A stretch of DNA of 64,000 nucleotides from Neoechinorhynchus agilis (GCA_051530055.1 CM121341.1:9092784-9156783), one strand, 5' to 3'; shown: positions 13,275 to 64,000, numbered from the stretch's first letter. Notes: generated from the sequence alone by a model not told the origin. Translations and numbers: made by a program.

Positions 13275-13721
13275 GGATTCGTCTGCAAAATAAAAGCGAA
13301 CGACGTAAACAAAAAAAGGCGTCCTGGGATCGCTCGCTCACACAAAAACCAACAAGTGCATGTTTGACTCCTTTGATTCTTCCGTATTACGCGCGCATTC
13401 AAACTTTTTTGGGATAAAAGAGTGTTGTTTTTATCTTTCTCAATTTAGGAGCCGAAGACGTGTGTGTGTGTTTGCAAATCAACGTACCGTCACCAAATGC
13501 GTATATTTCAGAAGAACGTCTCAGCTTGTTTTGGAGACTTTCGTTTCTTCTCATTAAGCGCGCACGCACACGTCTCATAAACAATTCGAGGTCATCAAGA
13601 GAAGTGGTCATGACGACACGTGTTTTTCTCTTATTCTTCCGAACATTGTTTGTGTGTGGGGCGTTTTTCTCCTGCCCGTTTCTTCGTTTTCTTCAGTAGA
13701 GGTCACCACCACCACCACCGA

Positions 13722-14228
13722 ATGGAGCATCAACACGATCCATCATCTTCTGCTGCTAGGAAGTTCGATGATGACCACACCGATCCCGATTGCATTGACG
13801 ACTTCTTCCACCAAACAACGATCGAACTCGTTTCACCTCGAAAACTTATCGTTGCAATATTCTTTTTGGCGTTTTCGTGGATATTTAGCTCTTACACGAT
13901 TACTCTGGCCGATGAACGATCTCCAGATCCTAACCAATACAGACCTCTACCCGATATATTTATAGACAACGTCACGAGGATCCCGTGGGCCGCTACGGTC
14001 AGTGAAGTCATTATTGTCGCTTTCGGCATCCTATTCCTTCTATTAGTCACTTTCCATCGATATAGGACACTCATCGTGGTCAGATGCTGCGTTATCCTTT
14101 CTACTCTTTATCTTTTCAGAGCCATGACTATCTGGGTCACCAGTATGCCCGTAGTTGGATCTCATCTCAATTGTAGATCGGTGAAACCTAACACTCTTAC
14201 AGGCAGAATTGAACGAGCTGCTCATGTT
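13722..14228 (+). CDS. Sphingomyelin synthase family (SGMS/SAMD8-like), 5' half
   Basis: PLPD motif, RIPWA, LYLFRAMTIWVTSMPVVGSHLNC...RIERAAHV; ATG at 13722; no SAM domain seen; homology stops at 14228-14231 without a canonical donor. Confidence 0.88.
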
Positions 14229-14364
14229 TTACAAACCTGCATTGGCCCACGGATAATCGCGTTTCCGGTTTCACGGCCCTCTACTTATCGCCTTCTTCTT
14301 CTATTACGAAAATTTCCCGTTTCTGCTCCTAAAATGTCGTCGATGCAAGCGGCAGAGGGGAATA

Positions 14365-16020
14365 TTACACCCATGAAGCGTTCTCTAGAAATATATAAAA
14401 AGAAATTTCTAGTTTTTAGATTATAAATTGTGATTTTTAACGCCAGAATTGCAAGTTGTCGCTTGGAAAGTTTTGATTAGAGTTCGTATATTCTTCTATT
14501 TCATAAGAAGTTCAGATTTTGATGGTTTTATGACGATCTAAACGATGAAAATAAGGGCGCATTTTTAAAACTCGAAAATTCTCAAGTCTTTTTTAAAAAA
14601 ATTATCCCCAAGATCTTTAGCAGGCGATTTCAGTCTATAATTTACCGATTAATGTCGATATCTGACGAGGAGGTACTAAGGGGCGGGGGAATGCGTAAAT
14701 AAATTATTGTTTAAAAGTCTTCATCCGCCTTAAATATTGATTTTATAGTTATTAAAAGCATCTTCAAATAATTTTGACTTTTATCTTACAGCCATGAAGC
14801 GTTCTCTAGAAATATATAAAAAGAAATTTCTAGTTTTTAGATTATAAATTGTGATTTTTAACGCCAGAATTGCAAGTTGTCGCTTGGAAAGTTTTGATTA
14901 GAGTTCGTATATTCTTCTATTTCATAAGAAGTTCAGATTTTGATGGTTTTATGACGATCTAAACGATGAAAATAAGGGCGCATTTTTAAAACTCGAAAAT
15001 TCTCAAGTCTTTTTTAAAAAAATTATCCCCAAGATCTTTAGCAGGCGATTTCAGTCTATAATTTACCGATTAATGTCGATATCTGACGAGGAGGTACTAA
15101 GGGGCGGGGGAATGCGTAAAGGAATTATTGTTTAAAAGTCTTCATCCGCCTTAAATATTGTTTGTAGTTATTAAAAGCATCTTCAAATAATTTTGACTTT
15201 TATCTTACAGCCATGAAGCGTTCTCTAGAAATATATAAAAAGAAATTTCTAGTTTTTAGATTATAAATTGTGATTTTTAACGCCAGAATTGCAAGTTGTC
15301 GCTTGGAAAGTTTTGATTAGAGTTCGTATATTCTTCTATTTCATAAGAAGTTCAGATTTTGATGGTTTTATGACGATCTAAACGATGAAAATAAGGGCGC
15401 ATTTTAAAACTCGAAAATTCTCAAGTCTTTTTTAAAAAAATTATCCCCAAGATCTTTAGTAGGCGATTTCAGTCTATAATTTACCGATTAATGTCGATAT
15501 CTGACGAGGAGGTACTAAGGGCGGGGGAATGCGTAAATAAATTATTGTTAAAAGTCTTCATCCGCCTTAAATTTTTTTAGTTATTAAAAGCATCTTCAAA
15601 TAATTTTGACTTTTATCTTACAGCCATGAAGCGTTCTCTAGAAATATATAAAAAGAAATTTCTAGTTTTTAGATTATAAATTATGATTTTTAACGCCAGA
15701 ATTGCAAGTTGTCGCTAGAAAAGTTTTGATTAGAGTTCGTATATTCTTCTATTCCATAAGAAGTTCAGATTTTGATGGTTTTATGACGGTCTAAACGATG
15801 AAAATAAGGGCGCATTTTTAAAACTCGAAAATTCTCAAGTCTTTTTTAAAAAAATTATCCCCAAGATCTTTAGTAGGCGATTTCAGTCTCTAATTAACCG
15901 ATTAATGTCGATATCTGACGAGGAGGTACTAAGGGGCGGGGGAATGCGTAAAGGAATTATTGTTTAAAAGTCTTCATCCGCCTTAAATATTGGGTTTTTG
16001 AGGTTATTAAAAACATCTTC
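14365..16020. repeat. Tandem array, ~420-bp unit, ~3.9 copies
   Basis: ccatgaagcgttctctag restarts at 14371, 14792, 15211, 15624; same family at 42130-43390. Confidence 0.96.
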
Positions 16021-16300
16021 TGATGGTGAACCCACGGTGAGGTTCGTAGAGAACGTCTTTAATAATTATTTACAGCGGATGAAGACTTTTAAACAATAAT
16101 TCCAAAGACTTCTAAATAACACTCCTAATGCAAATTAAAAGAATTTATTGATTCCAATATTTCGGCAAGGCACGATCTTGTACGCAATTAAAAAGAGTAC
16201 AGGATTGTGCCTCGTCGAAAACAATCGGCAATTTTAAAATAAAATCAAATTTCTACGCGCTAGAAAACAACCACTTTATGAACAGTTCAATCTTCAAACA

Positions 16301-16458
16301 GAATTCATTGATTCCAATATTTCGGCAATTCACAATCTTGTACGCATTCTTTATCAAAATTTCTTGTAGGTTTTTAAATATGTAAGTTCATGTAAGAAAC
16401 CTTGATAAAGAATGCGTACAAGATTGTGCCTTGCCGAAATATTGGAATCAATGAATTC
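16301..16458. repeat. Long inverted repeat (57-bp arms), member of a dispersed palindromic family
   Basis: 16301-16357 matches the reverse complement of 16402-16458 with 2 mismatches; a further arm copy lies at ~16143-16180. Confidence 0.9.
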
Positions 16459-17629
16459 TTCTAATTTTTACACGCCAGCCGCAAACATGAACAATTTAAT
16501 CTTCAAACACTTCTGATAAACTTTAGCTCTGAATCATTGTTTAAGTGGGTCAAGTGGTTGTTCATAATCCACGATCGCCGTGAAGGAAGGAGGAAACTCA
16601 CTGATCGGTGTGCTGTGTGCCTAAAACAAAAATAATCAGCAGTGTAAGGGATGTTCACTTTTAGAATTTAGTTCAGAAACCGATTGTTCAATTATCTATG
16701 TGTTCTTTAGCGATGAGAAGAGATATTGATTCCCTTTTTCACAATATTTCGTCTCGATCTATGCTTCTCATCGCCGTAAAAAAACACTATGATTACCTTC
16801 TTTTTATCCTTCATTTCTTGTTGATTTTTCATGATCGTTTGTTGGAGAATACGGACATTTTAAAGAGTTTTAAAGGTAAAACGCACTAGAGAAAAGCCAA
16901 CCTTTTAAATTCGCCTTTTTGCTTACAAAATATCAGCAATAGAAAGAAAAAGAGAGAAAAGGACAGTAGTTACAATTCTCGAGACTCTTTAACCCAAGTA
17001 AGACAATGGATTGCGCAATCGTTTGGTGTGAAACTCCTAGATGGTAAGAATGTTGCCTATGACTCTTACACTCGTGATTAGAATGGCTACGAAAACACAA
17101 CTACAATTTGAAATGAGATAGAAGCACTGTTGAAAATGGAGTATTTTTCCAGAATGATGATCTTTGTTCCCCAAAGGCAATAAGTTTTTTACTGTACCTT
17201 TTGGAAATGAGTACACTAAACCATCTATAAAGATTCTGATAGCTCCAGCTGAGAACGTAACGTTCTGTTTGTATGTAGAGATTTTGTCGACCAAAGTTAC
17301 TGGTCTTTCTAAATAAAGATAATCTTCACCTGGAGATATCTGTCACAACACTTCGGGATTATGTAATGCTTTTAGGGATTTGCAAGGATGATTGTCTAGA
17401 ATGAGTCATGCGAGCATTGTTACACTAAATTCTGAGTTTAAAAAAAGTGAATTTTTTAATTACGGAAAAAAGGCCACGCTCTTTAAAAAAAATAAAGAAT
17501 TCTTATACAAATTATGGAAATGGCTAAGAAATTGGCTTCTTTGTCATTATATTTATAAACTTTAGCCAACGACCAAGCGCATAGAACAAAGTTTTAGGAA
17601 ATGGTATCTTAAATAGAATGTGAATTTTC

Positions 17630-20600
17630 GTGTATGCATTTTCCATACTTGAAACTAAAAGTTTTAAATTGATTTCTCGTGCTTTGGTCAAAGTTCCTTT
17701 TCCCCTCCCGAATGTCGTTTGCTCTGAAGAAAAACATTAGCAAAGAATTTGAAGCATTTTTGGATTCGAGAAGCCTAATTTTTTTATGGAACATTGCATT
17801 TTCCATACTTGAAACTAAAAGTTTTAAATTGATTTCCCGTACTTTGGTCAAAGTTCCTTTTCCCCTCCCGAATGTCGTTTGCTCTGAAGGAAAACATTGA
17901 CAAAGAATTTGAAGCATTTTTAGATTCGAAAAGCCTAATTTCTTATGGAACATTGCATTTTCCATACTTGAAACTAAAAGTTTTAAATTGATTTCCTGTG
18001 CTTTGGTCAAAATTCGTTTACCCCTCCCGAATGTCGTTTGCTCTGAAGAAAAACATTAGCAAAGAATTTGAAGCATTTTTAGATTCGAAAAGCCTAACTT
18101 CTTATGGAACCTTGCATTTTCCATACTTGAAACTAAAAGTTTTAAATTGATTTCCCGTGCTTTGGTCAAAGTTCCTTCCTCCCGAATGTCGTTCGCTCTG
18201 AAGAAAAACATTAGCAAAGAATTTGAAGCATTTTTAGATTCGAAAAGCCTAATTTTTTTATGGAACATTGCATTTTCCATACTTGAAACTAAAAGTTTTA
18301 AATTGATTTCCCGTGCTTTGGTCAAAGTTCCTTCCCCCTCCCGAATGTCGTTTGCTCTGAAGGAAAACATTGACAAAGAATTTGAAGCATTTTTAGATTC
18401 GAAAAGCCTAATTTCTTATGGAACATTGCATTTTCCATACTTGAAACTAAAAGTTTTAAATTGATTTCCCGTGCTTTGGTCAAAGTTCATTCCCCCTCCC
18501 GAATGTCGTTTGCTCTGAAGGAAAACATTGACAAAGAATTTGAAGCATTTTTAGATTCGAAAAGCCTAATTTCTTATGGAACATTGCATTTTCCATACTT
18601 GAAACTAAAAGTTTTAAAGTGATTTCCCGTGCTTTGGTCAAACTTCCTTCCTCCCGAATGTCGTTTGCTCTGAAGGAAAACATTGACAAAGAATTTGAAG
18701 CATTTTTAGATTCGAAAAGCCTAATTTCTTATGGAACATTGCATTTTCCATACTTGAAACTAAAAGTTTTAAAGTGATTTCCCGTGCTTTGGTCAAACTT
18801 CCTTCCTCCCGAATGTCGTTTGCTCTGAAGGAAAACATTGACAAAGAATTTGAAGCATTTTTAGATTCGAAAAGCCTAATTTCTTATGGAACATTGCATT
18901 TTCCATACTTGAAACTAAAAGTTTTAAATTGATTTCCCGTGCTTTGGTCAAAGTTCCTTTCCCCTCCCGAATGTCGTTTGCTCTGAAGGAAAACATTGAC
19001 AAAGAATTTGAAGCATTTTTAGATTCGAAAAGCCTAATTTCTTATGGAACATTGCATTTTCCATACTTGAAACTAAAAGTTTTAAATTGATTTCCCGTGC
19101 TTTGGTCAAAGTTCCTTCCCCCTCCCGAATGTCGTTTGCTCTGAAGAAAAACATTGACAAAGAATTTGAAGCATTTTTAGATTCGAAAAGCCTAATTTCT
19201 TATGGAACATTGCATTTTCCATACTTGAAACTAAAAGTTTTAAATTGATTTCCCGTGCTTTGGTCAAAGTTCCTTCCTCCCGAATGTCGTTTGCTCTGAA
19301 GGAAAACATTGACAAAGAATTTGAAGCATTTTTAGATTCGAAAAGCCTAATTCTTATGGAACATTGCATTTTCCATACTTGAAACTAAAAGTTTTAAATT
19401 GATTTCCGTGCTTGGTCAAAGTTCCTTCCTCCCGAATGTCGTTTGCTCTGAAGGAAAACATTGACAAAGAATTTGAAGCATTTTTAGATTCGAAAAGCCT
19501 AATTTCTTATGGAACATTGCATTTTCCATACTTGAAACTAAGTTTTAAATTGATTTCTCGTGCTTTGGTCAAAGTTCCTTTCCCCTCCCGAATGTCGTTT
19601 GCTCTGAAGGAAAACATTGACAAAGAATTTGAAGCATTTTTAGATTCGAAAAGCCTAATTTCTTATGGAACATTGCATTTTCCATACTTGAAACTAAAAG
19701 TTTTAAATTGATTTCCCGTGCTTTGGTCAAAGTTCCTTTCCCCTCCCGAATGTCGTTTGCTCTGAAGGAAAACATTGACAAAGAATTTGAAGCATTTTTA
19801 GATTCGAAAAGCCTAATTTCTTATGGAACATTGCATTTTCCATACTTGAAACTAAAAGTTTTAAATTGATTTCCCGTGCTTTGGTCAAAGTTCCTTTCCC
19901 CTCCCGAATGTCGTTTGCTCTGAAGAAAAACATTGACAAAGAATTTGAAGCATTTTTAGATTCGAAAAGCCTAATTTCTTATGGAACATTGCATTTTCCA
20001 TACTTGAAACTAAAAGTTTTAAATTGATTTCCCGTGCTTTGGTCAAAGTTCCTTCCTCCCGAATGTCGTTTGCTCTGAAGGAAAACATTGACAAAGAATT
20101 TGAAGCATTTTTAGATTCGAAAAGCCTAATTTCTTATGGAACATTGCATTTTCCATACTTGAAACTAAAAGTTTTAAATTGATTTCCCGTGCTTTGGTCA
20201 AAGTTCCTTCCCCCTCCCGAATGTCGTTTGCTCTGAAGGAAAACATTGACAAAGAATTTGAAGCATTTTTAGATTCGAAAAGCCTAATTTCTTATGGAAC
20301 ATTGCATTTTCCATACTTGAAACTAAAAGTTTTAAATTGATTTCCCGTGCTTTGGTCAAAGTTCATTCCCCCTCCCGAATGTCGTTTGCTCTGAAGGAAA
20401 ACATTGACAAAGAATTTGAAGCATTTTTAGATTCGAAAAGCCTAATTTCTTATGGAACATTGCATTTTCCATACTTGAAACTAAAAGTTTTAAATTGATT
20501 TCCCGTGCTTTGGTCAAAGTTCCTTCCTCCCGAATGTCGTTTGCTCTGAAGGAAAACATTGACAAAGAATTTGAAGCATTTTTAGATTCGAAAAGCCTAA

Positions 20601-23600
20601 TTTCTTATGGAACATTGCATTTTCCATACTTGAAACTAAAAGTTTTAAATTGATTTCCCGTGCTTTGGTCAAAGTTCCTTCCTCCCGAATGTCGTTTGCT
20701 CTGAAGGAAAACATTGACAAAGAATTTGAAGCATTTTTAGATTCGAAAAGCCTAATTTCTTATGGAACATTGCATTTTCCATACTTGAAACTAAAAGTTT
20801 TAAATTGATTTCCCGTGCTTTGGTCAAAGTTCCTTCCCCCTCCCGAATGTCGTTTGCTCTGAAGGAAAACATTGACAAAGAATTTGAAGCATTTTTAGAT
20901 TCGAAAAGCCTAATTTCTTATGGAACATTGCATTTTCCATACTTGAAACTAAAAGTTTTAAATTGATTTCCCGTGCTTTGGTCAAAGTTCCTTTCCCCTC
21001 CCGAATGTCGTTTGCTCTGAAGGAAAACATTGACAAAGAATTTGAAGCATTTTTAGATTCGAAAAGCCTAATTTCTTATGGAACATTGCATTTTCCATAC
21101 TTGAAACTAAAAGTTTTAAATTGATTTCCCGTGCTTTGGTCAAAGTTCATTCCCCCTCCCGAATGTCGTTTGCTCTGAAGAAAAACATTAACAAAGAATT
21201 TGAAGCATTTTAAGATTCGAAAAGCCTAATTTCTTATGGAACATTGCATTTTCCATACTTGAAACTAAAAGTTTTAAAGTGATTTCCCGTGCTTTGGTCA
21301 AACTTCCTTCCTCCCGAATGTCGTTTGCTCTGAAGGAAAACATTGACAAAGAATTTGAAGCATTTTTAGATTCGAAAAGCCTAATTTCTTATGGAACATT
21401 GCATTTTCCATACTTGAAACTAAAAGTTTTAAATTGATTTCTCGTGCTTTGGTCAAAGTTCCTTCCCCCTCCCGAATGTCGTTTGCTCTGAAGAAAAACA
21501 TTGACAAAGAATTTGAAGCATTTTTAGATTCGAAAAGCCTAATTTCTTATGGAACATTGCATTTTCCATACTTGAAACTAAAAGTTTTAAATTGATTTCC
21601 CGTGCTTTGGTCAAACTTCCTTCCTCCCGAATGTCGTTTGCTCTGAAGGAAAACATTGACAAAGAATTTGAAGCATTTTTAGATTCGAAAAGCCTAATTT
21701 CTTATGGAACATTGCATTTTCCATACTTGAAACTAAAAGTTTTAAAGTGATTTCCCGTGCTTTGGTCAAACTTCCTTCCTCCCGAATGTCGTTCGCTCTG
21801 AAGAAAAACATTGGCAAAGAATTTGAAGCATTTTTAGATTCGAAAAGCCTAATTTCTTATGGAACATTGCATTTTCCATACTTGAAACTAAAAGTTTTAA
21901 ATTGATTTCCCGTGCTTTGGTCAAAGTTCCTTTCCCCCTCCCGAATGTCGTTTGCTCTGAAGGAAAACATTGACAAAGAATTTGAAGCATTTTTAGATTC
22001 GAAAAGCCTAATTTCTTATGGAACATTGCATTTTCCATACTTGAAACTAAAAGTTTTAAAGTGATTTCCCGTGCTTTGGTCAAACTTCCTCCCGAATGTC
22101 GTTTGCTCTGAAGGAAAACATTGACAAAGAATTTGAAGCATTTTTAGATTCGAAAAGCCTAATTTTTTATGGAACATTGCATTTTCCATACTTGAAACTA
22201 AAAGTTTTAAATTGATTTCTCGTGCTTTGGTCAAAGTTCCTTTCCCCTCCCGAATGTCGTTTGCTCTGAAGAAAAACATTAGCAAAGAATTTGAAGCATT
22301 TTTAGATTCGAAAAGCCTAATTTCTTATGGAACATTGCATTTTCCATACTTGAAACTAAAAGTTTTAAATTGATTTCCCGTGCTTTCAGTTCTTTCCCCT
22401 CCGAATGTCGTTTGCTCTGAAGGAAAACATTGACAAAGAATTTGAAGCATTTTTAGATTCGAAAAGCCTAATTTTTTATGGAACATTGCATTTTCCATAC
22501 TTGAAACTAAAAGTTTTAAATTGATTTCTCGTGGTTTGGTCAAAGTTCCTTTCCCCCTCCCGAATGTCGTTTGCTCTGAAGGAAAACATTGACAAAGAAT
22601 TTGAAGCATTTTTAGATTCGAAAAGCCTAATTTCTTATGGAACATTGCATTTTCCATACTTGAAACTAAAAGTTTTAAATTGATTTCTCGTGCTTTGGTC
22701 AAAGTTCGTTTACCCCTCCCGAATGTCGTTTGCTCTGAAGGAAAACATTGACAAAGAATTTGAAGCATTTTTAGATTCGAAAAGCCTAATTTCTTATGGA
22801 ACATTGCATTTTCCATACTTGAAACTAAAAGTTTTAAATTGATTTCTCGTGGTTTGGTCAAAGTTCCTTTACCCCTCCCGAATGTCGTTCGCTCTGAAGA
22901 AAAACATTAGCAAAGAATTTGAAGCATTTTTAGATTCGAAAAGCCTAATTTTTTTATGGAACATTGCATTTTCCATACTTGAAACTAAAAGTTTTAAATT
23001 GATTTCTCGTGCTTTGGTCAAAGTTCCTTTCCCCCTCCCGAATGTCGTTTGCTCTGAAGGAAAACATTAACAAAGAATTTGAAGCATTTTTAGATTCGAA
23101 AAGCCTAATTTTTTATGGAACATTGCATTTTCCATACTTGAAACTAAAAGTTTTAAATTGATTTCTCGTGCTTTGGTCAAAGTTCCTTTCCCCCTCCCGA
23201 ATGTCGTTTGCTCTGAAGAAAAACATTGGCAAAGAATTTGAAGCATTTTTAGATTCGAAAAGCCTAATTTTTTTATGGAACATTGCATTTTCCATACTTG
23301 AAACTAAAAGTTTTAAATTGATTTCTCGTGCTTTGGTCAAAGTTCCTTTCCCCCTCCCGAATGTCGTTTGCTCTGAAGGAAAACATTGACAAAGAATTTG
23401 AAGCATTTTTAGATTCGAAAAGCCAATTTTTTATGGAACATTGCATTTTCCATACTTGAAACTAAAAGTTTTAAATTGATTTCTCGTGCTTTGGTCAAAG
23501 TTCCTTTCCCCCTCCCGAATGTCGTTTGCTCTGAAGGAAAACATTGACAAAGAATTTGAAGCATTTTTAGATTCGAAAAGCCTAATTTCTTATGGAACAT

Positions 23601-25390
23601 TGCATTTTCCATACTTGAAACTAAAAGTTTTAAATTGATTTCCCGTGCTTTGGTCAAAGTTCCTTCCTCCCGAATGTCGTTTGCTCTGAAGAAAAACATT
23701 AGCAAAGAATTTGAAGCATTTTTAGATTCGAAAAGCCTAATTTCTTATGGAACATTGCATTTTCCATACTTGAAACTAAAAGTTTTAAATTGATTTCTCG
23801 TGGTTTGGTCAAAGTTCCTTCCTCCCGAATGTCGTTTGCTCTGAAGGAAAACATTGACAAAGAATTTGAAGCATTTTTAGATTCGAAAAGCCTAATTTCT
23901 TATGGAACATTGCATTTTCCATACTTGAAACTAAAAGTTTTAAATTGATTTCCCGTGCTTTGGTCAAAGTTCCTTCCTCCCGAATGTCGTTTGCTCTGAA
24001 GGAAAACATTGACAAAGAATTTGAAGCATTTTTAGATTCGAAAAGCCTAATTTCTTATGGAACATTGCATTTTCCATACTTGAAACTAAAAGTTTTAAAT
24101 TGATTTCTCGTGGTTTGGTCAAAGTTCCTTTACCCCTCCCGAATGTCGTTCGCTCTGAAGAAAAACATTAGCAAAGAATTTGAAGCATTTTTAGATTCGA
24201 AAAGCCTAATTTTTTTATGGAACATTGCATTTTCCATACTTGAAACTAAAAGTTTTAAATTGATTTCTCGTGGTTTGGTCAAAGTTCCTTTCCCCCTCCC
24301 GAATGTCGTTTGCTCTGAAGAAAAACATTAGCAAAGAATTTGAAGCATTTTTAGATTCGAAAAGCCTAATTTTTTTATGGAACATTGCATTTTCCATACT
24401 TGAAACTAAAAGTTTTAAATTGATTTCTCGTGCTTTGGTCAAAGTTCCTTTCCCCCTCCCGAATGTCGTTCGCTCTGAAGAAAAACATTAGCAAAGAATT
24501 TGAAGCATTTTTAGATTCGAAAAGCCTAATTTTTTTATGGAACATTGCATTTTCCATACTTGAAACTAAAAGTTTTAAATTGATTTCTCGTGCTTTGGTC
24601 AAAGTTCCTTTCCCCCTCCCGAATGTCGTTTGCTCTGAAGGAAAACATTGACAAAGAATTTGAAGCATTTTTAGATTCGAAAAGCCAATTTTTTATGGAA
24701 CATTGCATTTTCCATACTTGAAACTAAAAGTTTTAAATTGATTTCTCGTGCTTTGGTCAAAGTTCCTTTCCCCCTCCCGAATGTCGTTTGCTCTGAAGGA
24801 AAACATTGACAAAGAATTTGAAGCATTTTTAGATTCGAAAAGCCTAATTTCTTATGGAACATTGCATTTTCCATACTTGAAACTAAAAGTTTTAAATTGA
24901 TTTCCCGTGCTTTGGTCAAAGTTCCTTCCTCCCGAATGTCGTTTGCTCTGAAGGAAAACATTGACAAAGAATTTGAAGCATTTTTAGATTCGAAAAGCCT
25001 AATTTTTTATGGAACATTGCATTTTCCATACTTGAAACTAAAAGTTTTAAATTGATTTCTCGTGGTTTGGTCAAAGTTCCTTTCCCCTCCCGAATGTCGT
25101 TTGCTCTGAAGGAAAACATTGACAAAGAATTTGAAGCATTTTTAGATTCGAAAAGCCTAATTTCTTATGGAACATTGCATTTTCCATACTTGAAACTAAA
25201 AGTTTTAAATTGATTTCCCGTGCTTTGGTCAAAGTTCCTTCCTCCCGAATGTCGTTTGCTCTGAAGGAAAACATTGACAAAGAATTTGAAGCATTTTTAG
25301 ATTCGAAAAGCCTAATTTTTTCATGGAACATTGCATTTTCCATACTTGAAACTAAAAATTTTAAATTGATTTCCCCTACTTTGGTCAAAC
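17630..25390. repeat. Satellite array, ~155-160-bp monomer, ~49 copies
   Basis: Monomer ..ccgtgctttggtcaaagttccttcctcccgaatgtcgtttgctctgaaggaaaacattgacaaagaatttgaagcatttttagattcgaaaagcc.. repeated head-to-tail with few variant sites. Confidence 0.98.
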
Positions 25391-25500
25391 TTCCTTTCCT
25401 GCTCAAAAAGCAGTCTCTAGAGAGCATTCATGTTTTTTCGATAGAACTCCTCAAACCGAATTTCTGGCTCTTCTACCATTGCGAATCGTGGTTCAATGTT

Positions 25501-26202
25501 CTAATAAGCCAAGGCTTAGACATCTACGGCAGTGATATGTGTGGCGACTACATATTCAGTGGTCATACCTGTATGCTGGTTATTCTGGCTCACTTCATAA
25601 CGGAATACGTTAGTGATAATTGTGTACTATTCCGATTGCTTGTGTGGTTCACTTGTGGAAGTGGAGTGGTGTGTATATTGGCGGCACATTTCCACTACAC
25701 AGTCGACGTGGTTCTAGCAGTGGTGATTGCTTCAAGATTATTCGTTTACTACCATTCGCTGTGTCAATGTCCAGTGATGTTCGAGTCTTCAATTCGACAA
25801 CGATTCATTTATCAGATTCCTCTGTTCTATTTTGCCGAGAACGAATCCACGTGCGAACTACGATCAAGAGTTCGAGGAGCTGTACAAATCCCACCGTCGT
25901 TTGTTTCGGCAATTGGCCGATTGCGACGACAGTTCGGATTCGGTCAGCGGGTCGGAATGAGTAGCGCTAGGAGGAAACGCGTTGCCACTGGCGATGCCAA
26001 TGCAGGGGGAGGAGGAGGTATTGGTGCGAATAGTCACCATCTCCGTCTGCGCCGTAACGATGATTCTAACGAAACTGTCAGTCTCATCTGTCCACAGTCA
26101 ACACGAATAGCTGCCGCGGTTAATATTGAGGCGGAGGAGGATGATGAAGCGATGGCACGGAGAAACTCCGTGGTTCTTGTAATCGAGAACGATGAATTGT
26201 AA
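25501..26202 (+). CDS. Sphingomyelin synthase family, 3' catalytic half
   Basis: LISQGLDIYGSDMCGDYIFSGHT and AAHFHYTVDVVLAVVIASRLFVYYHSL carry the family His/His/Asp catalytic motifs; stop TAA at 26200-26202. Confidence 0.9.
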   Translation, partial: LISQGLDIYGSDMCGDYIFSGHTCMLVILAHFITEYVSDNCVLFRLLVWFTCGSGVVCILAAHFHYTVDVVLAVVIASRLFVYYHSLCQCPVMFESSIRQRFIYQIPLFYFAENESTCELRSRVRGAVQIPPSFVSAIGRLRRQFGFGQRVGMSSARRKRVATGDANAGGGGGIGANSHHLRLRRNDDSNETVSLICPQSTRIAAAVNIEAEEDDEAMARRNSVVLVIENDEL

Positions 26203-28262: not shown

Positions 28263-29015
28263 GTGATCACGATGCTGTGCGATAGAGTCCATGAACTTTC
28301 GTCACACGAGGCTCTATTTCTGATCAAGAATACCCTCTTCATCCCGGAACTACTTTATAAACTGCGCACGGCTTCCTTCGTCAAGCACGTCGATAAGTTA
28401 AAGAAGCTTCATTGCCTGTATCGTCCGGTGGTTTGGGTATTCTAAAAGCAGTAGATGTGTCGTTGCCCGCGTTTTTAGGATCATTCGAACTGGGTTGGGA
28501 TCTGGTAAAACGTATATCGGGACCAATGTTCTGTTTTGCGGACGAATTTCTAGTAGCTGTCCATAAATGGTGGGAGAATACGGGTTATTACCAAGTTCCC
28601 GTGAATGGTCTAAAGCAGTCCATCTGGGATAAACTTTCAGTCGCCCGAGCTCATAGTTCTCTAATTTCAGGCTCTCGCGACGAGGTCGACCGGGCTAGAT
28701 TGCTGGCAGTCTCTGCAAGAGAATCGGGAGCATGGTTAAAAAACCCATTGCATCAGTGGGAACACTCCTCGTAGACGAAACAGTTCGGATCGGAGTTTCC
28801 CTCAGATTAGGTCTACCGATTTGTGTCGAACATCGTTGCCGGTGTGGAATGATTGTGGATCCACTGGGGGGACATGGCCTTGTTTGCAACAAATCAGGGG
28901 ATCGTTTCTCACGGCATTCTGAATTGAACGACGTAATTTCGCGTGCTCTAAATACGATGAACGTCCCGAACATTTTAGAGCCAAACAACCTGTGCAGGCT
29001 TGATGGTCGTCGTCC
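28263..29015 (+). mobile_element. CRE-like RLE non-LTR retrotransposon fragment
   Basis: LPVSSGGLGI..LPAFLGS, RARLLAVSARESGAWL, LRLGLPICVEHRCRCG..GHGLVC..RFSRHSELND..LEPNNLCRLDGRRP; frameshifted and truncated at both ends. Confidence 0.88.
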
Positions 29016-30470: not shown

Positions 30471-31904
30471 ACTCATATAAATCAATCTAAATTTTAAGAG
30501 CTACAATACGCTTTGAAGACGTGAATCTCGTACTGAAAGTGTAGAATGGTCGCCTTGATAAGTTCTAATAGAGTTTACATCGCGATCCAAAGAACCATGA
30601 TAAAATTTCCATATTCTACTCCCAAGTTTACATTTTTATAGAGAATTATAATAATTGATTGATTTATTTGGGCCTTCGCGTAGGCCGAAAATTATCAAAT
30701 ATTATAATACCCGCTATAAAAAAAGTAAATGATGAACATCTTTACGAAAACTCTCAAGCTTCCCGATTCGAGAAGATGTGTAAAATATTATAAGAATTAT
30801 GAAAAAAGAAGTTGACAATAAAGTCTATTGTATTCCATAGAATCAAAAGGCATTGAAACTGTTTTTTGAAAATGGCAGTTATGATTGCTGAGAAATCGCC
30901 AGTTCGTTCAGGTGTTCCGAATTGACGTGTCTTCATAAAATATTGTTTGAAGATTGAACTGTTCATAATGGTTGAATTCTTGTATTTTCCTTTGAAAACA
31001 ACGTTGATCAAAAGGCGTACAAGATTGTGCCTCCGAAAACAATCAGATTTAAAAAATCATTTCAATTTTTCTAGGCCATAAAACAATTATAAAATATTAA
31101 AACCTTGATATCGATAATTTTTTGTATAACGGCACAATAAGAACAAAATAATCAAGTAGTTTTCACGGCAAAACACAAGCGTAATGAAGCTCCGAACAAG
31201 GGTTCAATTCTGAAATTGCTACTTTTTTTTGAGAAAACGCAAAACCGATCAAAGATTGATTTTGAAGAAATAAAAGAACAAAATTTAATGAATAGACCAC
31301 GTCCGATTCAAAAACTAATTGTAAACTTTAACAATTAAAAATTAAGTAATCTGAAAAAGCAATAAAAAACATTATTGAGTAAAAACATGCGAGAAATCCT
31401 TTTTTAAGAATAAGATGTTTAAAAGATTTAATTTCCTCGTTTAATTTGTTTCCTGTGCACCAAGCTAAAACCCAATCAAAAAAGGCTTTTCGCTCGTTTC
31501 ATGTGCTCTAAGCTGACATCAATTTTTCTCTAGGTTCTGAAATATTTCTGTATTGAATAGCAAAGTCTCAAGGCGACTGATTTGTGATTTGGATTGTTTA
31601 AAAAAACGAGGAGCCACGGCGTAATGTGACGATTTCACTATAAAAATTCTATTTCGTTCAGAGAATCAAAAACGTAAACCTTTAATGAAAACTAACCATT
31701 TAATGAACGATTGTAGATGATTCTTAAAGGAGTTAAATCCTTGCGGTTTGATTATTTAACGCTAAAAGGTCATCGCAGAAACTATGATCTAAAGGACCGG
31801 CACGATCAAAGAACAACGATTCTAGGGGAAAGAATTCAATTATCCGAACGGTCAATGTATTCTGAATTTGTCTTCGGAAATTAAATTCTTCTACGAACTT
31901 TGTA

Positions 31905-34899: not shown

Positions 34900-35230
34900 C
34901 ATCTCTCGGCAATTAACACACTCACCACCTCCCGCCAAATTCCAGCTTTTGTCCTTCCTCGACCGCCGCCATCACGCTGGCAGCATTGCCCCTTTGTACT
35001 GCTAGCGAGATATTTTGTCGAAGGAATCAATTTCTTCGAGAGATCCTGGAGCAGAGAGAGTGCCGAGCGCTCCATACGTCTCTACCCCAAGGGGGATAAA
35101 ATAATGAGCCCTCGATAAGTGAAGATATTTCCGTATTTTCCTCCCTTCCGCTGCACTGGCGGCACCACCGGCGATTTCGAGGGAGTAGGGGATGTTGAAG
35201 AAATTTCGAACTGACTTGTCTTTGGTTGAA
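34900..35230 (-). mobile_element. CRE-like RLE retrotransposon 3' fragment
   Basis: AGGAASAAEGRKIRKYLHLSRAHYFIPLGVETYGALG then, after frameshifts, ISLAVQRGNAASVMAAV..W*. Confidence 0.85.
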
Positions 35231-36320: not shown

Positions 36321-36960
36321 TTAGTTTACCGAACCCAAACCCGATATTCCTTGATGGCCGCGGCATTGCCGCGTTGGATCGCCGCGCTGATTCGCTGCAA
36401 CAGGAAGTTGCTGGATCGCATATCGCCGGTGGCATGTTTTAGCATCCCTCCCAGTCGTGAGAGGAAATAATCGGCTTCCGCAATCGGGATGAAAATATAT
36501 TGATGCCCATCGAGCGAGGAGTACTTCTGCCGCTTCTTTTCCTCGCTGAAGCTGGCGATTGTTCCCGCCTTTGAGGTGCCATCCCGTAACTGGGATGCTG
36601 CGAGCGTGTTGGGGCAGGTAAAATCCCAAACCAGTATTTTCCCGGAGCACCATGGGAGGAGGGCGTTTACCGTCGTTCCGGGAGAGTCCGACTGGTTCGA
36701 GTCGAGCGGGAAAACCGGCCGTTGAGAGTGCCTCCCTGATTATGCGGTTGACTGCTGAGTGCCGTGCGTGCCGAGCAGTTGAACGCTTGCAGTCAAGGCC
36801 GTGAGTTCTCGATCCGTTCACTGTCTCACCGCACCGACACGTATATGAGCCTGAGAATTCGATGCCCAACCGAAGCCCCACAGCGACGGTGATGGCTTGG
36901 TCATCCAGCCTCGTGCCAACAGCCGTGATCGGGAAAGCCTTCAAGAAGTCGCTGGAGTAG
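36321..36960 (-). mobile_element. CRE-like RLE retrotransposon 3' fragment
   Basis: AVGLRLG..CRCG..HGLDCKRSTARHARHSAVNRIIREALSTAGFPARLEPVGLSRNDGKRP; shifted frames give WDFTC, EEKKRQKY, QRISAAIQRGNAAA. Confidence 0.88.
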
Positions 36961-38224: not shown

Positions 38225-38340
38225 CACACTTCGGAGGCGCTCAGCCGCACTCGAAGGGACCACAGGACCAACCCTCCCGTGGAACCCAGCGACCTGCGGA
38301 TTTGAACCATCGACTAATCGAGATCACTCGACCGAAGATT
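38225..38340 (-). mobile_element. GC-rich tRNA-like/SINE-like segment
   Basis: Minus strand has A-box-like GGTCGAGTG and B-box GGTTCAAATCC followed by a GC-rich body; spacing too short for an intact tRNA cloverleaf. Confidence 0.3.
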
Positions 38341-38356
38341 GAACTGTTCATAAAGT

Positions 38357-38474
38357 GGTTGTTTTATAGGGCGTAGAAATTAAGCCGATTGTTTTCGACG
38401 AGCCATAATCTTTTTGTACGTCGTTTGATCAAGGTCTAAAATAAAACCCCGTTTCTACGCGCTAGAAAACAACC
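38357..38474. mobile_element. MITE-like element with 23-bp inverted repeats
   Basis: ggttgttttatagggcgtagaaa versus reverse complement of tttctacgcgctagaaaacaacc (2 mismatches); shares modules with 16140-16510, 30945-31050, 45475-45590. Confidence 0.6.
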
Positions 38475-39009
38475 AAATCTTTATTTACAAACAATGAATG
38501 ATCGAAAACCACGCGAAAAATCACAAACTCGGGATTATGCTCATCGCGTATCCATTGAGCAAAATATTATTGTTTATTCGAAGAACATTGATTCTTTTGT
38601 TTATGTAGCGCTTAGCCGATACGATGGACACGAAATGTTATCGATCGCAATTGATTTCCAAACTATGAAGAAGCCCTCGTCGGGTTTGAAGAACGTCTTG
38701 AATTGAGAAGACTTCTAAACAATAATTCCCGGCATAGTAACGTTCTTAATTTTTTTGAAGGTTTTAAGATATGTCTAAAATTCGATGAGTTTAATATCCT
38801 TTTTAATAATTGATTTTATGATATTTTCCAATAATAAAATTTGAGTAAATTAATGGAGCGAGTATAGCCTTTTGAAATAGACAGAATAAAATCACAGGCT
38901 GTCGGGCAATAAAACTGAAAAAGTTTTTTGAGAACTCGTAAACAATTTCTTAATATACACAAATTCACCAATGAAAGCTCTGGATACCAATCTTCATGAA
39001 AAAATATTT

Positions 39010-41741: not shown

Positions 41742-42129
41742 TTAAACTTCTTCGCAATTAACGCGAACCTTTCCTTACAATATCGGTTGTCATGGAACCA
41801 AATGTTATTTTTTATATTCCTTTTATTTAACCGAACTTGAGTTCACTATCTCGGCCAGAACCAATTGATGGACACAATAATGTTTATCAACTCAAAATAG
41901 CACGAAATCAATAATTTTTATCTAATCGCAACTCTCTATAGACGTTTCCGTCCTTATCCTGATTTACAAAACGCACGAGTTCTGAGATAAATGATTTAAG
42001 TGTTTTTTCTTGTCAAATGTTTCATTTTTTCAAGTAAGAAAATCTCATTAGCCTATTCATTAAAGTCAATGTTAATTCAATGCGTTGTTATTAACTAAAT
42101 ATTTCTTGTGATTTTGTCCATCATTTTTT

Positions 42130-43470
42130 ATCTTACACCCATGAAGCGTTCTCTAAAAATATATAAAAAGAAAATACGCGATTGCTTTCTATTTTTAGAT
42201 TATAAATTGTGATTTTTAACGCCAGAATTGCAAGTTGTCGCTAGAAAAGTTTTGATTAGAGTTCGTATATTCTTCTATTTCATAAGAAGTTCAGAATTTT
42301 GATGGTTTTATGACGATCTAAACGACGAAAATAAGGGCGAATTTTTAAAACTCGAAAATTCTCAAGTCTTTTTTAAAAAAATTATCCACAAAATCTATAG
42401 TAATCGATTTCAGTCTATAATTTACCGATTAATGTCGATATCTGACGAGGAGGTACTAAAGGGCGGGGGAATGCGTAAAGGAATTATTGTTTAAAAGTCC
42501 TCATCCGCCTTAAATGTCAGTTTTTTTGAGGTTATTAAAAACATCTTCAAATAATTTTGACTTTTATCTTACACCCATGAAGCGTTCTCTAGAAATATAT
42601 AAAAAGAAATTTCTAGTTTTTAGATTATAAATTATGATTTTTAACGCCAGAATTGCAAGTTGTCGCTTGGAAAGTTTTGATTAGAGTTCGTATATTCTTC
42701 TATTTCATAAGAAGTTCAGATTTTGATGGTTTTATGACGATCTAAACGACGAAAATAAGGGCGAATTTTTAAAACTCGAAAATTCTCAAGTCTTTTTTAA
42801 AAAAATTATCCCCAAGATCTTTAGTAGGCGATTTCAGTCTATAATTTACCGATTAATGTCGATATCTGACGAGGAAGTACTGGGAGCGGGGGAATGCGTA
42901 AATAAATTATTGTTTAAAAGTCTTCATCCGCCTTAAATATTGATTTTATAGTTATTAAAAGCATCTTCAAATAATTTTGACTTTTATCTTACAGCCATGA
43001 AGCGTTCTCTAGAAATATATAAAAAGAAATTTCTATTTTTTAGATTATAAATTGTGATTTTTAACGCCAGAATTGCAAGTTGTCGCTTGGAAAGTTTTGA
43101 TTAGAGTTCGTATATTCTTCTATTTCATAAGAAGTTCAGATTTTGATGGTTTTATGACGATCTAAACGATGAAAATAAGGGCGCATTTTTAAAACTCGAA
43201 AATTCTCGAGTCTGTTTTAAAAAAATTATCCCCAAGATCTTTAGTAGGCGATTTCAGTCTATAATTTACCGATTAATGTCGATATCTGACGAGGAGGTAC
43301 TGGGGGCGGGGGAATGTGCAAAGGAATTATTGTTTAAAAGTCTTCATCCGCCTTAAATGTCAGTTTTTTGAGGTTATTAAAAACATCTTCTGATGGTGAA
43401 CCCACGGTGAGGTTCGTAGAGGACGTCTTTAATAACTATAATAATTTACAGGCTGTAGACTTCTAAACAA
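42130..43470. repeat. Second ~420-bp tandem array (~3 copies) with the same fold-back 3' terminus as 14365-16100
   Basis: ccatgaagcgttctcta at 42139, 42575, 42995; followed by catcttctgatggtgaacccacggtgaggttcgtagag as at ~16015. Confidence 0.95.
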
Positions 43471-46065
43471 TAATCCTAATCGATTAATGTCCATTTCAGA
43501 ATCCTTACGATTTCCGCTTACAAAAGGTCCCCGTTCCTAGAAATACTCTATATTGATCATTATTTAGTTATTTTAGTATTTTCTTATAAAATCCAGTGAG
43601 TTTTTGACAAGAAGTTCGGTTCCATTTTAGATTTAATAGTTCGCATCCCTGTTAGTTTTTATAACTTCAACGTTTAATCATCGTTGTTGCTTCTTTTTAG
43701 GTGTGTAAACCGTCATTAAAATACCAAGATTAAAATTTCGCTAAAATTTTGGACTATATTTGCATGGTAAATAACCTTTTTGTAATAATGTTTCACATTT
43801 TGTTTGATTATAGAAAATGCTCCCGTAGCATTTCCTAAGGATATTAAAGAGCGGCTAAAAAATAAGTTCTTTAGCTTAATGAATATCTTTTCGCTTTTAT
43901 GGCACCTTTTCGTCCACAAACAACGACTTTTTTCGCATTATTTACTTAATGTTAAACTCTTAATAAAATCTAGCATTTATTTCAAGACATCGCCTATGAA
44001 AAGTACTCAGGCAGACTGTGAATCAATATGCTGATAAACCTCTTATTCTAACTACATTTCGTTCCACATATCGATCAAATCCTTTTGTAGACGAAGATGC
44101 GATCACCATTGGGGTTTTTTGATAACTGACACTTTAAAATGTTCCCTGTGTGAAATTTTAGAAACATTGTCCACATTGACACTTGATCATAATTTAAACA
44201 AATGATTAACCATGAGGATTTCCTTAGTTCGTTATTTATGAGATTCCGACAAAACCCCTGAAGGTTTTCAGCAATGAAAGCACTTGGCATATTTTGATAT
44301 TGTCAAAATCCGTATTGCGTTTTTCAGTTTTATCAGTGATATGAATAGTTTTGCAGCTATCTCATTGATTCCTCAACAAATTTATTTATCGCAACTAAGA
44401 CAGTTTCGAAAGTAGAGAATCATTTAATCCGACAAGTCATATTTAGTTACAATCTTGTTTATAATCTTCTTATTTTCTGAACTTAAATATTATTTTAAAA
44501 TCTATTTGATGGTTATAAAATTTCTCTTTAGAGAACGTATTGCTCTATTTTGCAGCAATCTAATGTTGGTCACACGACAAGGCGAGACTTTTCTTAGTTC
44601 GAGAATGTAAAATCAAATTGTTTGTACAAACGTTAGTTCGTCTACTCAAAGACAATGGGTCCTTTCTTCACAAAAGGACCACCAATGACCATCGTAATGA
44701 AGCAGTCGTCCACGAAAATCATCTAATCGTTTTTAAAAGTATTGCTTTCGAAAGCCGTTTTTATCAGTGCTTCGTCAACATCAAACTCACAGAGTGCATC
44801 TCATGACATCAAAACGGATATTCATTGTTAGCTGCCATACGAAACTATTTGCTGGCAATGGTTCGTCGTAATTCAGAGATTCCTTTTCTTGGCACAAGAA
44901 TCACTTCCATTAGCAGAGTGCTAATCGATTCTCTTCCAAAATACCAGAAACTTGGGTTGATCTCTCCTGAGTGCTTTCATGGCTCATTAATGTATTAGAT
45001 TAAGAAAATGGGAAGAGAAATGGATTTTAGGGAAAGACCCTTCAATAACTGCAACATTATTGCTTCAAGTCTTTCAACAATTCGAGGTTAATAAGCTTTA
45101 CAGTTACTTTAAGAACTTGCTCTTCAATTCACAAAGGAGCGCAATGAGCCTCAGTCTTTCATAAGACACATTATTCTTGGTGTAAATGAACGCATTTCTA
45201 TACTAAGAGTCTATATATCATCCAACAGTATATTTTATTCTTCTTTAATAATATTTCTCGCAATTAAAATTTTCGGTTAGTCACTTCGGACCACAGCCAG
45301 TCATCGTCCGGACATTCTACGAACTATGCTTCCACAAGACTAATGTCTCTACGTCGCTTTTTTATATGCAGACGGTCTTTAGTTGCCTCTGCGAAACAAC
45401 TGATTTTTTTGATAGTTTTGATGTTGCTTTTTTGATTTATTGGATTATTGTTTTGCCAACCCACCCCGGATCTAAATTCGGTTGTTTTCGGGCGTAGAAA
45501 AATTAAAATGATTTTATTTTTTAATTCCGAGATTTTGCAGGCACAAGCTTGTACGCCTTTTGATCAAGGTTGTTTTCGGAGGAAAATTCAAGTTCGAAAT
45601 TATCCAATGTGAAATATCGGAAATAAATTAAGAAAATATTTGATTTATTTGAAATATTTCAAAGTGATAACCTCGCCTTATTAAGTCGAAAAAAACGTTT
45701 AAGCGACGACTAATGAAGCGAAGTTATCTCTTTCGAAATAGTTCAAATAAATTAAAAAAAAGCTATGCCCGGGGGATTATGCTAATCAAAACTATACCCT
45801 GATCATCCCGAAGGATTTTATGATTAATTTTTGTGTGTCTAACAGTGATGTGGGTCGTGCTTTTTAAAGTGTCCACCTTTTCAGTTAGCTTTTAAAGTCA
45901 ACTTTTTGAAGGATAGACACACACACACCTTCATTCCACAAAAAATAGAATACGTTATTATTTAAATGAAAATTCGTAGGATCCTTTCAAGCTACCTATC
46001 TTGTTGGATAACCACTACAACTTTTTTTTAGTACTAAATATAAACCCATGCCGTAATGCTTTAAA

Positions 46066-51037: not shown

Positions 51038-51728
51038 AGAATAGATCGCCGTAGATTGTATGTGGTGAAATCGTGTGGGTGTGTTTTGATCGACAATTCA
51101 CCTTATTTTCTCCAAATGTTCGATTTTTGTATCGACGTCAAAGTAAACGAACAAGTAGATGAAGGTTATTTTTTAACAATTAGATTTTCATTTCGTATTT
51201 TTTGATGCGGATTTAGATTGTGCCGAAATATCGGATTTAATAAATTCTTTTAATTTCGTACGCCATAGCAAAAATACTTAGTCGGTAGACTGCTTGAGTG
51301 AGGCAAACTTGAGCATCTAACGAGGCAAATTTGGAAAAAATCCAATTGCGCTTTTGTCGATTCTAACGACTTCTATATAGTTAATTTTAAGCTTTAGAAA
51401 CTAAATAGGCCAACTTTATCGTGCTAGACTGAGTTGTGTTTTATTGGTTAACAAGTGGTGAAGCAACTTGACCTCGAATTTATCTTTTCCGCAAAAAATT
51501 ACTTTTATCTTTTATTGCGCTAATCTTAGACAACAGATTCATTATGATCACTTTGTGAGGTTTGCTGGCCTTGTCTCCTATGATGAATCCTATTGCAATC
51601 GTATGAAAGCTTTCTCAAACGGATTTACCTACAAACCTTGGTGTCTGAGGTGAAGCTCGTACAAAATCCATTGAGCTGTCACTTTCAATAGGCTAAAATT
51701 GTTTGAATTTTGCGGTTAAATATAAGTT

Positions 51729-63700: not shown

Positions 63701-64000
63701 CGTTTTCATTAAGTCGCCTACGGCTACCTAAATCGGCCAGCAAATTTGTTTTACGATCTCCAGATTTTAAAATTGGTTCGGTTCCGGATATTGTCGATAT
63801 GTTTATACTGTCCAAGAATTGATCAAATCCTTTGCGATGCAAAGTCTACACCGTGGGATTACCATAGATCGTCAAATAGAAAGATCTTATAAAACTTACA
63901 TGTAAAAATCTGCCCGGTCGTAGGCCACCGGGGACGTTCCTTTCATTTGATGCATAACTGTCCCTATTTAGATGCGCCAATTCCAATACATCATCGTCAA
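51729..64000 (-). CDS. UNC80: UNC-80 (NALCN channel complex subunit), multi-exon, 5' end beyond window
   Basis: LLLREFENPSALIRYNAVCRFHVLWSQRYQFWMRVEEGAQAFYKILPPAIDFAMPSPQIG..DPCWLP, APVVTKAAYILECIDFVHKCSAGQWPAW, GIHAVVCKEESTSAFGVVLNILEVL; many checked junctions are GT-AG; full exon map not resolved. Confidence 0.88.
57581..57640 (-). repeat. Poly-Gly-encoding (GGN)n tract inside UNC-80 exon
   Basis: ccaccaccaccggcgccgcctccaccgccaccgccgccgccaccacc on + strand. Confidence 0.9.
60185..62585. repeat. Tandem array, ~241-bp unit, ~10 copies, inside a canonical UNC-80 intron
   Basis: aactaatttttagtcgg restarts at 60196, 60437, 60697, 60938, 61187, 61428, 61669, 61908, 62166, 62406; flanking minus-strand donor GAAAG|GTTTGA and acceptor TTTCCAG|G are phase-matched. 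Confidence 0.97.

Follow-up and report, generated by a model that had tools for sequence, protein, structure and literature searches.

An 11.3-kb satellite-bearing block splits the reading frame of an SMSr-like gene in the thorny-headed worm Neoechinorhynchus agilis

Introduction

New introns flanked by short direct repeats have been described in Daphnia, where they arise from double-strand-break repair. In ciliates, internal eliminated sequences interrupt open reading frames (ORFs) as non-coding blocks with a direct repeat (a pointer or TA) at each end, and their exact deletion restores the gene. Introners, that is, transposon-made introns, are known in Micromonas, dinoflagellates and some animals (bioRxiv 10.1101/2022.06.06.494994, PMC9860276; PMC12130899). 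Here, we analyze a 64-kb stretch of DNA (the window) from the thorny-headed worm Neoechinorhynchus agilis (Acanthocephala; GCA_051530055.1, CM121341.1:9,092,784-9,156,783), in which a gene similar to SMSr of the sphingomyelin synthase (SMS) family is split into two halves by an 11,272-bp block, mostly tandem array, bounded by the short direct repeat ATGTT. The reading that we favor, with a probability of about 0.5, is that satellite-bearing DNA was inserted recently, with a 5-nt duplication, and disrupts an intron-free SMSr-like paralogue; the insertion may be polymorphic.

Compared with the insertional disruption of an exon that leaves a target-site duplication, the locus shares the exact break in a continuous exon, the short direct repeats, the repetitive content, one component with a second copy and the lack of splice signals. 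It differs in that the block is a nested 11-kb composite without terminal inverted repeats (TIRs), long terminal repeats (LTRs), poly(A), Helitron-type ends or a transposon protein, and in that its ends are found nowhere else in the window. Introners are likewise insertions into coding sequence flanked by a duplication, and in principle an insertion of this kind could create a new intron; however, in introners the element and the duplication supply the GT and the AG, and many near-identical copies exist, whereas the ATGTT repeat of the block holds no AG, the duplication and the ends show no AG/GT arrangement, no usable donor is present and no copy family was seen, neither flank peptide of the block occurring in other annotated proteins. 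The Daphnia introns resemble the block as filler DNA in an exon with a short direct repeat, but they are short and have working GT-AG ends. With the internal eliminated sequences of ciliates, the block has in common a direct repeat at each end, an ORF interrupted by non-coding DNA and the restoration of the gene by exact deletion; unlike them, it belongs to an animal genome with no known somatic/germline split, is a single case in 64 kb and shows no sign of an excised form. A purely mechanistic suggestion is that circular DNA integrated by short homology, as with Crypton-type elements or satellite-derived extrachromosomal circles; this would give a direct repeat without TIRs and fits an insert made of tandem arrays, but the block carries no tyrosine recombinase gene and circles were not observed.

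Genomic Data

The genome of N. agilis comprises 46.2 Mb, of which 31.6% is coding (PMC12690905). The assembly is a MaSuRCA/Flye hybrid of Illumina, Oxford Nanopore (ONT) and a little HiFi sequence, obtained from about 50 pooled worms and from single females, the DNA being that of whole worms with germline and embryos included (PMC12690905). It was processed by purge_dups, by instaGRAAL Hi-C scaffolding, which re-orders at restriction fragments, and by TGS-GapCloser, which used raw long reads, and was annotated by BRAKER with guidance from RNA-seq (PMC12690905). Public data comprise ONT, HiFi and Illumina DNA reads (pooled and single worms), 74 RNA-seq libraries and a Trinity assembly (PMC12690905). 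An SMS-family entry is absent from the supplement of the genome paper. The window lies in the 19.4-Mb record CM121341.1 and contains no runs of N; a window position p corresponds to position p + 9,092,783 of the record. The N. agilis sequence compared here consists of the window and one 21.5-kb locus.

The Two Halves and the Joined Protein

Both halves of the gene (Table 1) are stop-free, and deletion of the block between them yields an ORF of 1,209 nt, encoding 402 amino acids; an earlier note on this DNA had described the halves, their coordinates, the 11,272-bp deletion and the ATGTT repeat, and the sequence is as it had been described. The joined protein matches Pfam PAP2_C (PF14360) at 1.4e-22 and belongs to the SMS/SMSr family by this domain, by the CGDxxxSGHT and HYTxDV catalytic motifs (CGDYIFSGHT and HFHYTVDV, both in half B) and by its six-helix core. 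The closest match outside the locus is P0003 (ACOME3_008946), a paralogue on another chromosome (CM121343.1), followed by proteins of Pomphorhynchus laevis and Seison and then by the SMSr of many animals. Seven other family members have 42 invariant positions in common, and the window copy keeps the invariant residue at 41 of them. Alignment with human SMSr (PDB 8IJR; query residues 143-244, E 3.4e-47) is gap-free across the seam, and 31 residues separate the two Cys in both proteins, in line with the count that the earlier note had given for the human enzyme. In the stretch around the seam, P0003 reads RIKRAANVMLSQGMEING and the joined window copy reads RIERAAHV/LISQGLDIYG, with the slash at the seam. 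An AlphaFold model (mean pLDDT, i.e., predicted local distance difference test, 65; 84-94 in the helices of the membrane core) places the seam within helix 159-172, in the loop preceding the catalytic CGDY helix. The length of this loop is unchanged at the seam in eight SMS-family proteins across animals, and the only difference is a gain of two residues near the first Cys in P. laevis. The exact seam thus restores a protein of family-typical length and sequence.

The annotation treats the halves as two separate genes. P0002 (234 aa) is half A extended to a run-on stop, and P0001 (317 aa) starts at an ATG at 25249 inside a satellite; no annotated feature lies within the block between 15249 and 25248. 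Among transcript-derived proteins, neither the joined protein nor P0003 has a member outside the genome annotation, and the absence of a joined transcript there is uninformative because P0003 has none either.

The Seam and the Direct Repeats

The ATGTT repeat is extendable at both junctions to ATGTT(T/C)TA, that is, 8 nt with one mismatch. A junction ambiguity of at least 5 nt arose by chance in 0.77% of 200,000 random deletions in the window, and copies of ATGTT on both sides of the block are what the target-site duplication of a mobile element would leave. The ambiguity permits six joins, in which the removed segment begins and ends with AT..CA, TG..AA, GT..AT, TT..TG, TT..GT or TT..TT; none of the six has GT-AG, GC-AG or AT-AC ends, so the claim that no register of the join gives GT-AG stands. 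Direct reading of the junction sequence, in which the 5′ end of the block is ATGTTTTACAAA or GTTTTACAAA and the 3′ end is CGTGGTTCAATGTT, revealed neither a U12-type 5′ sequence (/RTATCCTT) nor a TCCTTAAC-like branch site at the block ends. RNA pairing between the two junction regions was no better than in random windows (11-22% of the controls were as good), and the block ends matched no Rfam family.

A second direct repeat, TCATGTTTT, has its two copies in the same reading frame (BLAST E 0.089, in a small search space). A join at these copies would keep the frame and add 22 residues; the repeat may be due to chance or may reflect a more complicated history of insertion.

The Paralogue and the P. 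laevis Homologue

The conserved core of P0003 has three GT-AG introns, of 49, 49 and 44 nt, whose positions also hold introns in the P. laevis gene; the window copy lacks all three. The stretch that is interrupted in the window is a single exon in both P0003 and the P. laevis homologue. Therefore, what the block interrupts is a former exon, and it does not take the place of an old intron. The window copy is a paralogue devoid of introns, whether as a retrogene or through the intron loss that is general here. As in a processed retrogene, all parental introns are absent; plain intron loss is the alternative, since many genes of the window are intron-free, CAP, Snf7 and Band7 also being single ORFs. 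Neither a poly(A) relic nor a flanking duplication could be seen after the stop or before the start, and such relics would not be expected to survive because the paralogues share 58% protein identity. No synteny was found between the window copy and the paralogue locus. In the core, the identity to the P. laevis protein is 50% for the window copy and 43% for P0003.

Three other parts of the window (28565-29013, 34943-35196 and 36512-36956) show translated similarity of 44-63% identity to the flanks of the P. laevis SMSr-like gene (locus L002, 8531-9361 and 35125-35422). The ORFs of these window segments have no Pfam match, and the similarity probably reflects shared repeated or transposon-derived coding sequence.

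Composition of the Block

Tandem arrays make up 84% of the block. The two satellites and the hairpins that had been noticed in it are present (Table 1), and the reported lack of a transposase and of TIRs holds as well: Pfam searches of the block ORFs found no transposase, reverse transcriptase or recombinase, and comparison of the block ends in all registers found no terminal inverted or direct repeats and no LTR. The only terminal feature is a sub-terminal complementarity (10/12), which is out of register at the two ends, and neither poly(A) nor Helitron-type termini are found there. In contrast to the earlier description, no "gene remnants" were recognized, as the block ORFs gave no credible Pfam match.

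The dispersed unit with the 421-bp array has a second copy at 42126-43474, with 94-97% identity, sharp shared boundaries and three to four repeat copies; no target-site duplication or TIR is visible for this unit. From such copies, tandem arrays appear to move as units in the N. agilis genome. The hairpins have arms of 66, 55 and 37 nt, and partial copies occur in the window (30944-31086, 38334-38484 and 51221-51256) and on another chromosome (locus L001, 13178-13229). This hairpin family also gives sub-threshold Rfam matches to plant microRNA precursors, which merely reflect the hairpin shape. The monomers of the 158-bp satellite have a mean pairwise identity of approximately 96.5%, independent of the distance along the array. 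Long ORFs that run through this satellite (17609-18010 and 22325-22861, minus strand) narrowly pass the Pfam gathering threshold of PF18736 (HEPN pEK499_p136), and these matches are almost certainly inflated by the repeats.

Searches for other copies of the block ends and unique flanks in the window and the 21.5-kb locus found none, although internal parts, namely the 421-bp array and the hairpins, do recur. The peptide of the left flank is shared by no other database protein, that of the right flank occurs in no other annotated protein, and neither has a Pfam match. ARAGORN and Rfam recognized no tRNA-like or other RNA element in the block. Three possible origins of the flanks were rejected: the right flank as a degenerate satellite unit (alignment score 18, within the shuffles), the flanks as diverged duplicates of the adjoining exon, with "KPN" on both sides (scores below the shuffle means), and a head derived from a tRNA or a short interspersed nuclear element at the right end (nothing found by ARAGORN and Rfam).

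Table 1. Coordinates of the features at the interrupted SMSr-like locus (window positions)
Feature	Position	Strand	Description
Coding half A	13722-14228	+	Codons 1-169; stop-free; ends ..GCT CAT GTT within codons of predicted luminal helix
Left-junction region	14100-14430	+	No normal-strength donor; best GT 2.4 bits; best in-frame GT 1.3 bits (14319)
Left direct repeat ATGTT	14224-14228	+	Extended form ATGTTTTA, 14224-14231
Interrupting block	14229-25500	+	11,272 bp; CM121341.1:9,107,012-9,118,283
Left unique flank	14229-14361	+	48.9% GC; gene frame stop-free; open 65 codons to 14423
Dispersed repeat unit with 421-bp x4 tandem array	14362-16100	+	Array 14365-16020
Nested hairpins resembling a miniature inverted-repeat transposable element	16132-16467	.	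Arms 66 nt and 55 nt
AT-rich non-repeated middle segment	16468-17634	.	No recognizable coding content
158-bp satellite, about 49 monomers	17635-25396	+	Monomers 151-160 nt
Best acceptor-like site near right junction	25391-25410	+	..CTCAAAAAG/CAG; 7.1 bits; phase 0; reaches 12 nt into right flank
Right unique flank	25397-25500	+	41.3% GC; gene frame stop-free; open frame back 122 codons into satellite
Second direct repeat TCATGTTTT	25428-25436 and 14222-14230	+	Same reading frame; BLAST E 0.089
Second acceptor-like site	ends 25444	+	TTTCGATAG/; 4.1 bits
Right direct repeat ATGTT	25496-25500	+	Extended form ATGTTCTA, 25496-25503
Coding half B	25501-26202	+	Codons 170-402 plus stop; stop-free; begins CTA ATA AGC; TAA 26200-26202

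Splice Signals at the Locus and in Neighboring Genes

Splice sites were scored with a position weight matrix built on 32 real introns, whose donors reach a median of 7.0 bits, with 31 of the 32 at 2.9 bits or above. The left-junction region contains no donor of normal strength (Table 1), and only 4% of random 200-nt windows are as donor-poor. An acceptor scoring at least 7.1 bits, the value of the best site near the right junction, occurs in 10% of random 100-nt windows. The weak GC-AG intron that the earlier note had listed among its candidates is in frame, as claimed, but its donor scores -0.4 bits and its acceptor 4.1 bits, and its removal would leave the conserved helix replaced.

Introns elsewhere in the N. 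agilis sequence provide the baseline, and the claim that they are canonical is borne out. Mapping the annotated UNC80 protein P0066 (ACOME3_002163) back to the window revealed 29 introns, every one of them GT-AG; most measure 41-56 nt, and none exceeds 590 nt. This model begins at an internal ATG (60085) and omits upstream exons (59992-63842, minus strand), across which an open-frame canonical path, inferred from the frame and the splice scores and not from RNA, would first cross an intron of 52 nt (62819-62768) and next one of 2,487 nt (62633-60147), which holds a 241/490-bp satellite. The donor of this satellite-filled intron scores 7.8 bits, and the repeat-filled UNC80 intron is thus readable as GT-AG with an open frame across it. 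Mapping of the UNC80 junctions onto human UNC80 (PDB) gave no result, the region being too divergent. In total, 35 introns were counted as GT-AG: the 29 annotated and 2 inferred ones of UNC80, the 3 of P0003 and one 50-nt gap in RhoGAP, whose ends were uninspected. Long satellite-filled introns therefore exist here, in canonical form, and are missed by BRAKER.

Interpretation of the Interruption

In the favored reading, 11.3 kb of repetitive DNA would have been inserted into the previously continuous coding exon of the intron-free SMSr-like paralogue, duplicating ATGTT or using it as microhomology, and would have split the gene inside codons of the conserved luminal helix. The allele would no longer make the full enzyme, and the most that it could yield would be a shortened N-terminal protein that reads on as far as the stop at 14424-14426; the allele may be polymorphic among the pooled worms that were sequenced, and a second SMS-family gene, P0003, would remain on the other chromosome. 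An insertion is favored because of the exact seam, the significant repeat, the single exon in the relatives and the repeat content, all of which, like the absence of splice signals, were observed directly. A composite insert that arrived ready-made and recently and the inactivation of the gene would complete this picture. As there are no splice signals at the seam and no usable donor nearby, the simplest consequence is that the allele is inactivated, and as both halves are perfect, the insertion would have to be recent. Of the candidates named in the earlier note, an insertion with target duplication is hence the one best supported, by the one-exon structure in relatives, the exact seam, the 5-nt repeat, the mobile and satellite content and the lack of fitting splice signals. 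One component of the block, the unit with the 421-bp array, is mobile as a unit, as its second copy indicates. The small canonical introns elsewhere, the lack of significant RNA pairing between the junctions and the RNA-seq-guided call of two separate genes also agree with this reading.

Several observations weigh against this reading. The 402 codons of the joined ORF contain no stop or frameshift, that is, no decay, and the interrupted paralogue is the slower-evolving and more conservative of the two. The block itself looks older, since its satellite monomers differ by approximately 3.5% with many indels and the two copies of the 421-bp array differ by 3-6%; its earlier characterization as an old-looking mosaic is fair and provides the chief objection to a gene that is simply dead. 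By our own estimate, growth of the arrays in place within a dead gene would have been accompanied by about 5-6 ORF-breaking mutations in 1,209 nt, and the probability of an intact ORF would be below 1%. Just inside both boundaries, the gene frame is stop-free (65 codons at 14229-14423 and 122 codons at 25135-25500), open runs as long being found at roughly 6% and 1% of random positions, respectively, and the unique flanks are GC-rich (49% and 41%) compared with the interior of the block (31-34%). The arrival of a ready-made block would also have had to proceed without leaving behind a TIR, an LTR or poly(A). In addition, since the annotation failed to bridge the long UNC80 intron, its call of two genes at the SMSr-like locus says little about splicing there. 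An intact ORF beside an old-looking block means either that the insert arrived ready-made and recently or that the gene stayed under selection with the block present; the former is plausible, since array-bearing units are mobile here.

The second of these possibilities underlies the alternative that fares best, although we consider it unlikely: the insertion would be old and tolerated, with most of the block removed as a GT-AG intron whose sites lie inside the inserted DNA, and the repeats would have accumulated later, as in UNC80. For example, splicing from a donor at 14226, 14268 or 14319 to the acceptor at 25410 would lengthen the luminal loop by 29-60 in-frame residues. Such an insertion would account for the intact conserved ORF beside the nested, old-looking block, and it agrees with the unique flanks, both stop-free in the gene frame and GC-rich like exons, with the phase-0 acceptor of 7.1 bits 12 nt inside the right flank, and with the existence of long satellite-filled canonical introns overlooked by the annotation. 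However, the in-frame donors score 0.1-1.3 bits, compared with at least 2.9 bits in 31 of 32 real ones, and 96% of random windows are richer in donor-like sites than this region. The added residues would break up the predicted helix 159-172 in a loop of nearly constant length across animals, the codon-usage scores of the flanks are intermediate between coding and non-coding values, and the many possible donor-acceptor pairs mean that such coincidences carry little weight.

An assembly artefact, in which MaSuRCA/Flye, instaGRAAL or TGS-GapCloser misplaced the block and the real locus is uninterrupted, is improbable. The pooled hybrid assembly, the use of purge_dups, the Hi-C re-ordering and the gap closing with raw long reads leave room for such an error, and the right junction has a HinfI site 14-18 nt away; nevertheless, the junctions are not at restriction sites, the window has no N runs, and a clean 5-nt duplication around unique sequence is a biological product and not an output of these programs.

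The exact removal of the block between the ATGTT copies, from somatic DNA or from RNA by a route other than GT-AG, so that the gene stays functional, would explain everything, yet it also has a low probability, even with the two routes taken together. Both routes had been proposed in the earlier note and gained no positive support: no junction pairing or U12-like 5′ sequence was found, the other introns are GT-AG, and neither a second example in the window nor, to our knowledge, an animal precedent exists. Removal from RNA at the seam, by a non-spliceosomal or highly atypical splicing that restores the 402-aa enzyme, would account for a seam that gives a perfect family-typical protein and for an ORF that is intact despite the old-looking block; moreover, a non-canonical junction would escape BRAKER and standard aligners. 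It is nevertheless very improbable, since all other introns counted are GT-AG, the only register beginning with GT ends in AT and lacks a U12-type 5′ sequence, the junction RNA pairs as random windows do, the ends have no Rfam match, and we know of no animal precedent for such removal of an 11-kb element from RNA.

Least credible of all is programmed DNA elimination, in which a germline-limited block would be cut precisely between ATGTT "pointers" in somatic nuclei, in the manner of an internal eliminated sequence: the short direct repeat at both ends, the intact ORF, a DNA source of whole worms with germline and embryos and a satellite-rich content, which eliminated DNA of other animals shares, would fit it, but a full-text literature search found no report for Acanthocephala, satellites of the same kinds are also found in ordinary DNA between genes and within an intron with canonical ends, and we know of no precise intragenic excision in animals outside antigen-receptor loci. 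A second interrupted gene was looked for in the window and none was found: OST3, Mod(r), Band7, Snf7, RhoGAP, Med31, CAP and UNC80 are uninterrupted or canonically spliced, OST3/OST6 ending before a 291-bp satellite and the long intron of UNC80 being canonical.

Implications and Minor Observations

If the block marks an insertion allele, the event is an ordinary one, which would nevertheless indicate mobility of satellite-bearing units in a parasite whose genome is very compact (46 Mb) and would provide a dated marker for repeat dynamics. A gene that is still functional would be remarkable, implying either a new animal tolerance of a large exon insert or precise DNA excision in a phylum with no known case; under exact removal, the most conservative SMSr-like gene of N. 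agilis would be functional despite 11 kb of satellites in an exon. The analysis also flags two mis-annotated gene models, the SMSr-like gene being split in two and UNC80 being truncated.

The start codon of the SMSr-like gene is preceded, at a distance of 24 nt, by an acceptor-like TTTTCTTCAG (13680-13722), which is compatible with an intron in the 5′ untranslated region or with spliced-leader addition. In the window as a whole, tandem arrays of nine different units (103-490 bp) occupy approximately 20 of the 64 kb; they are found in and between compact genes, most of which lack introns, and this is striking in a genome of 46 Mb.

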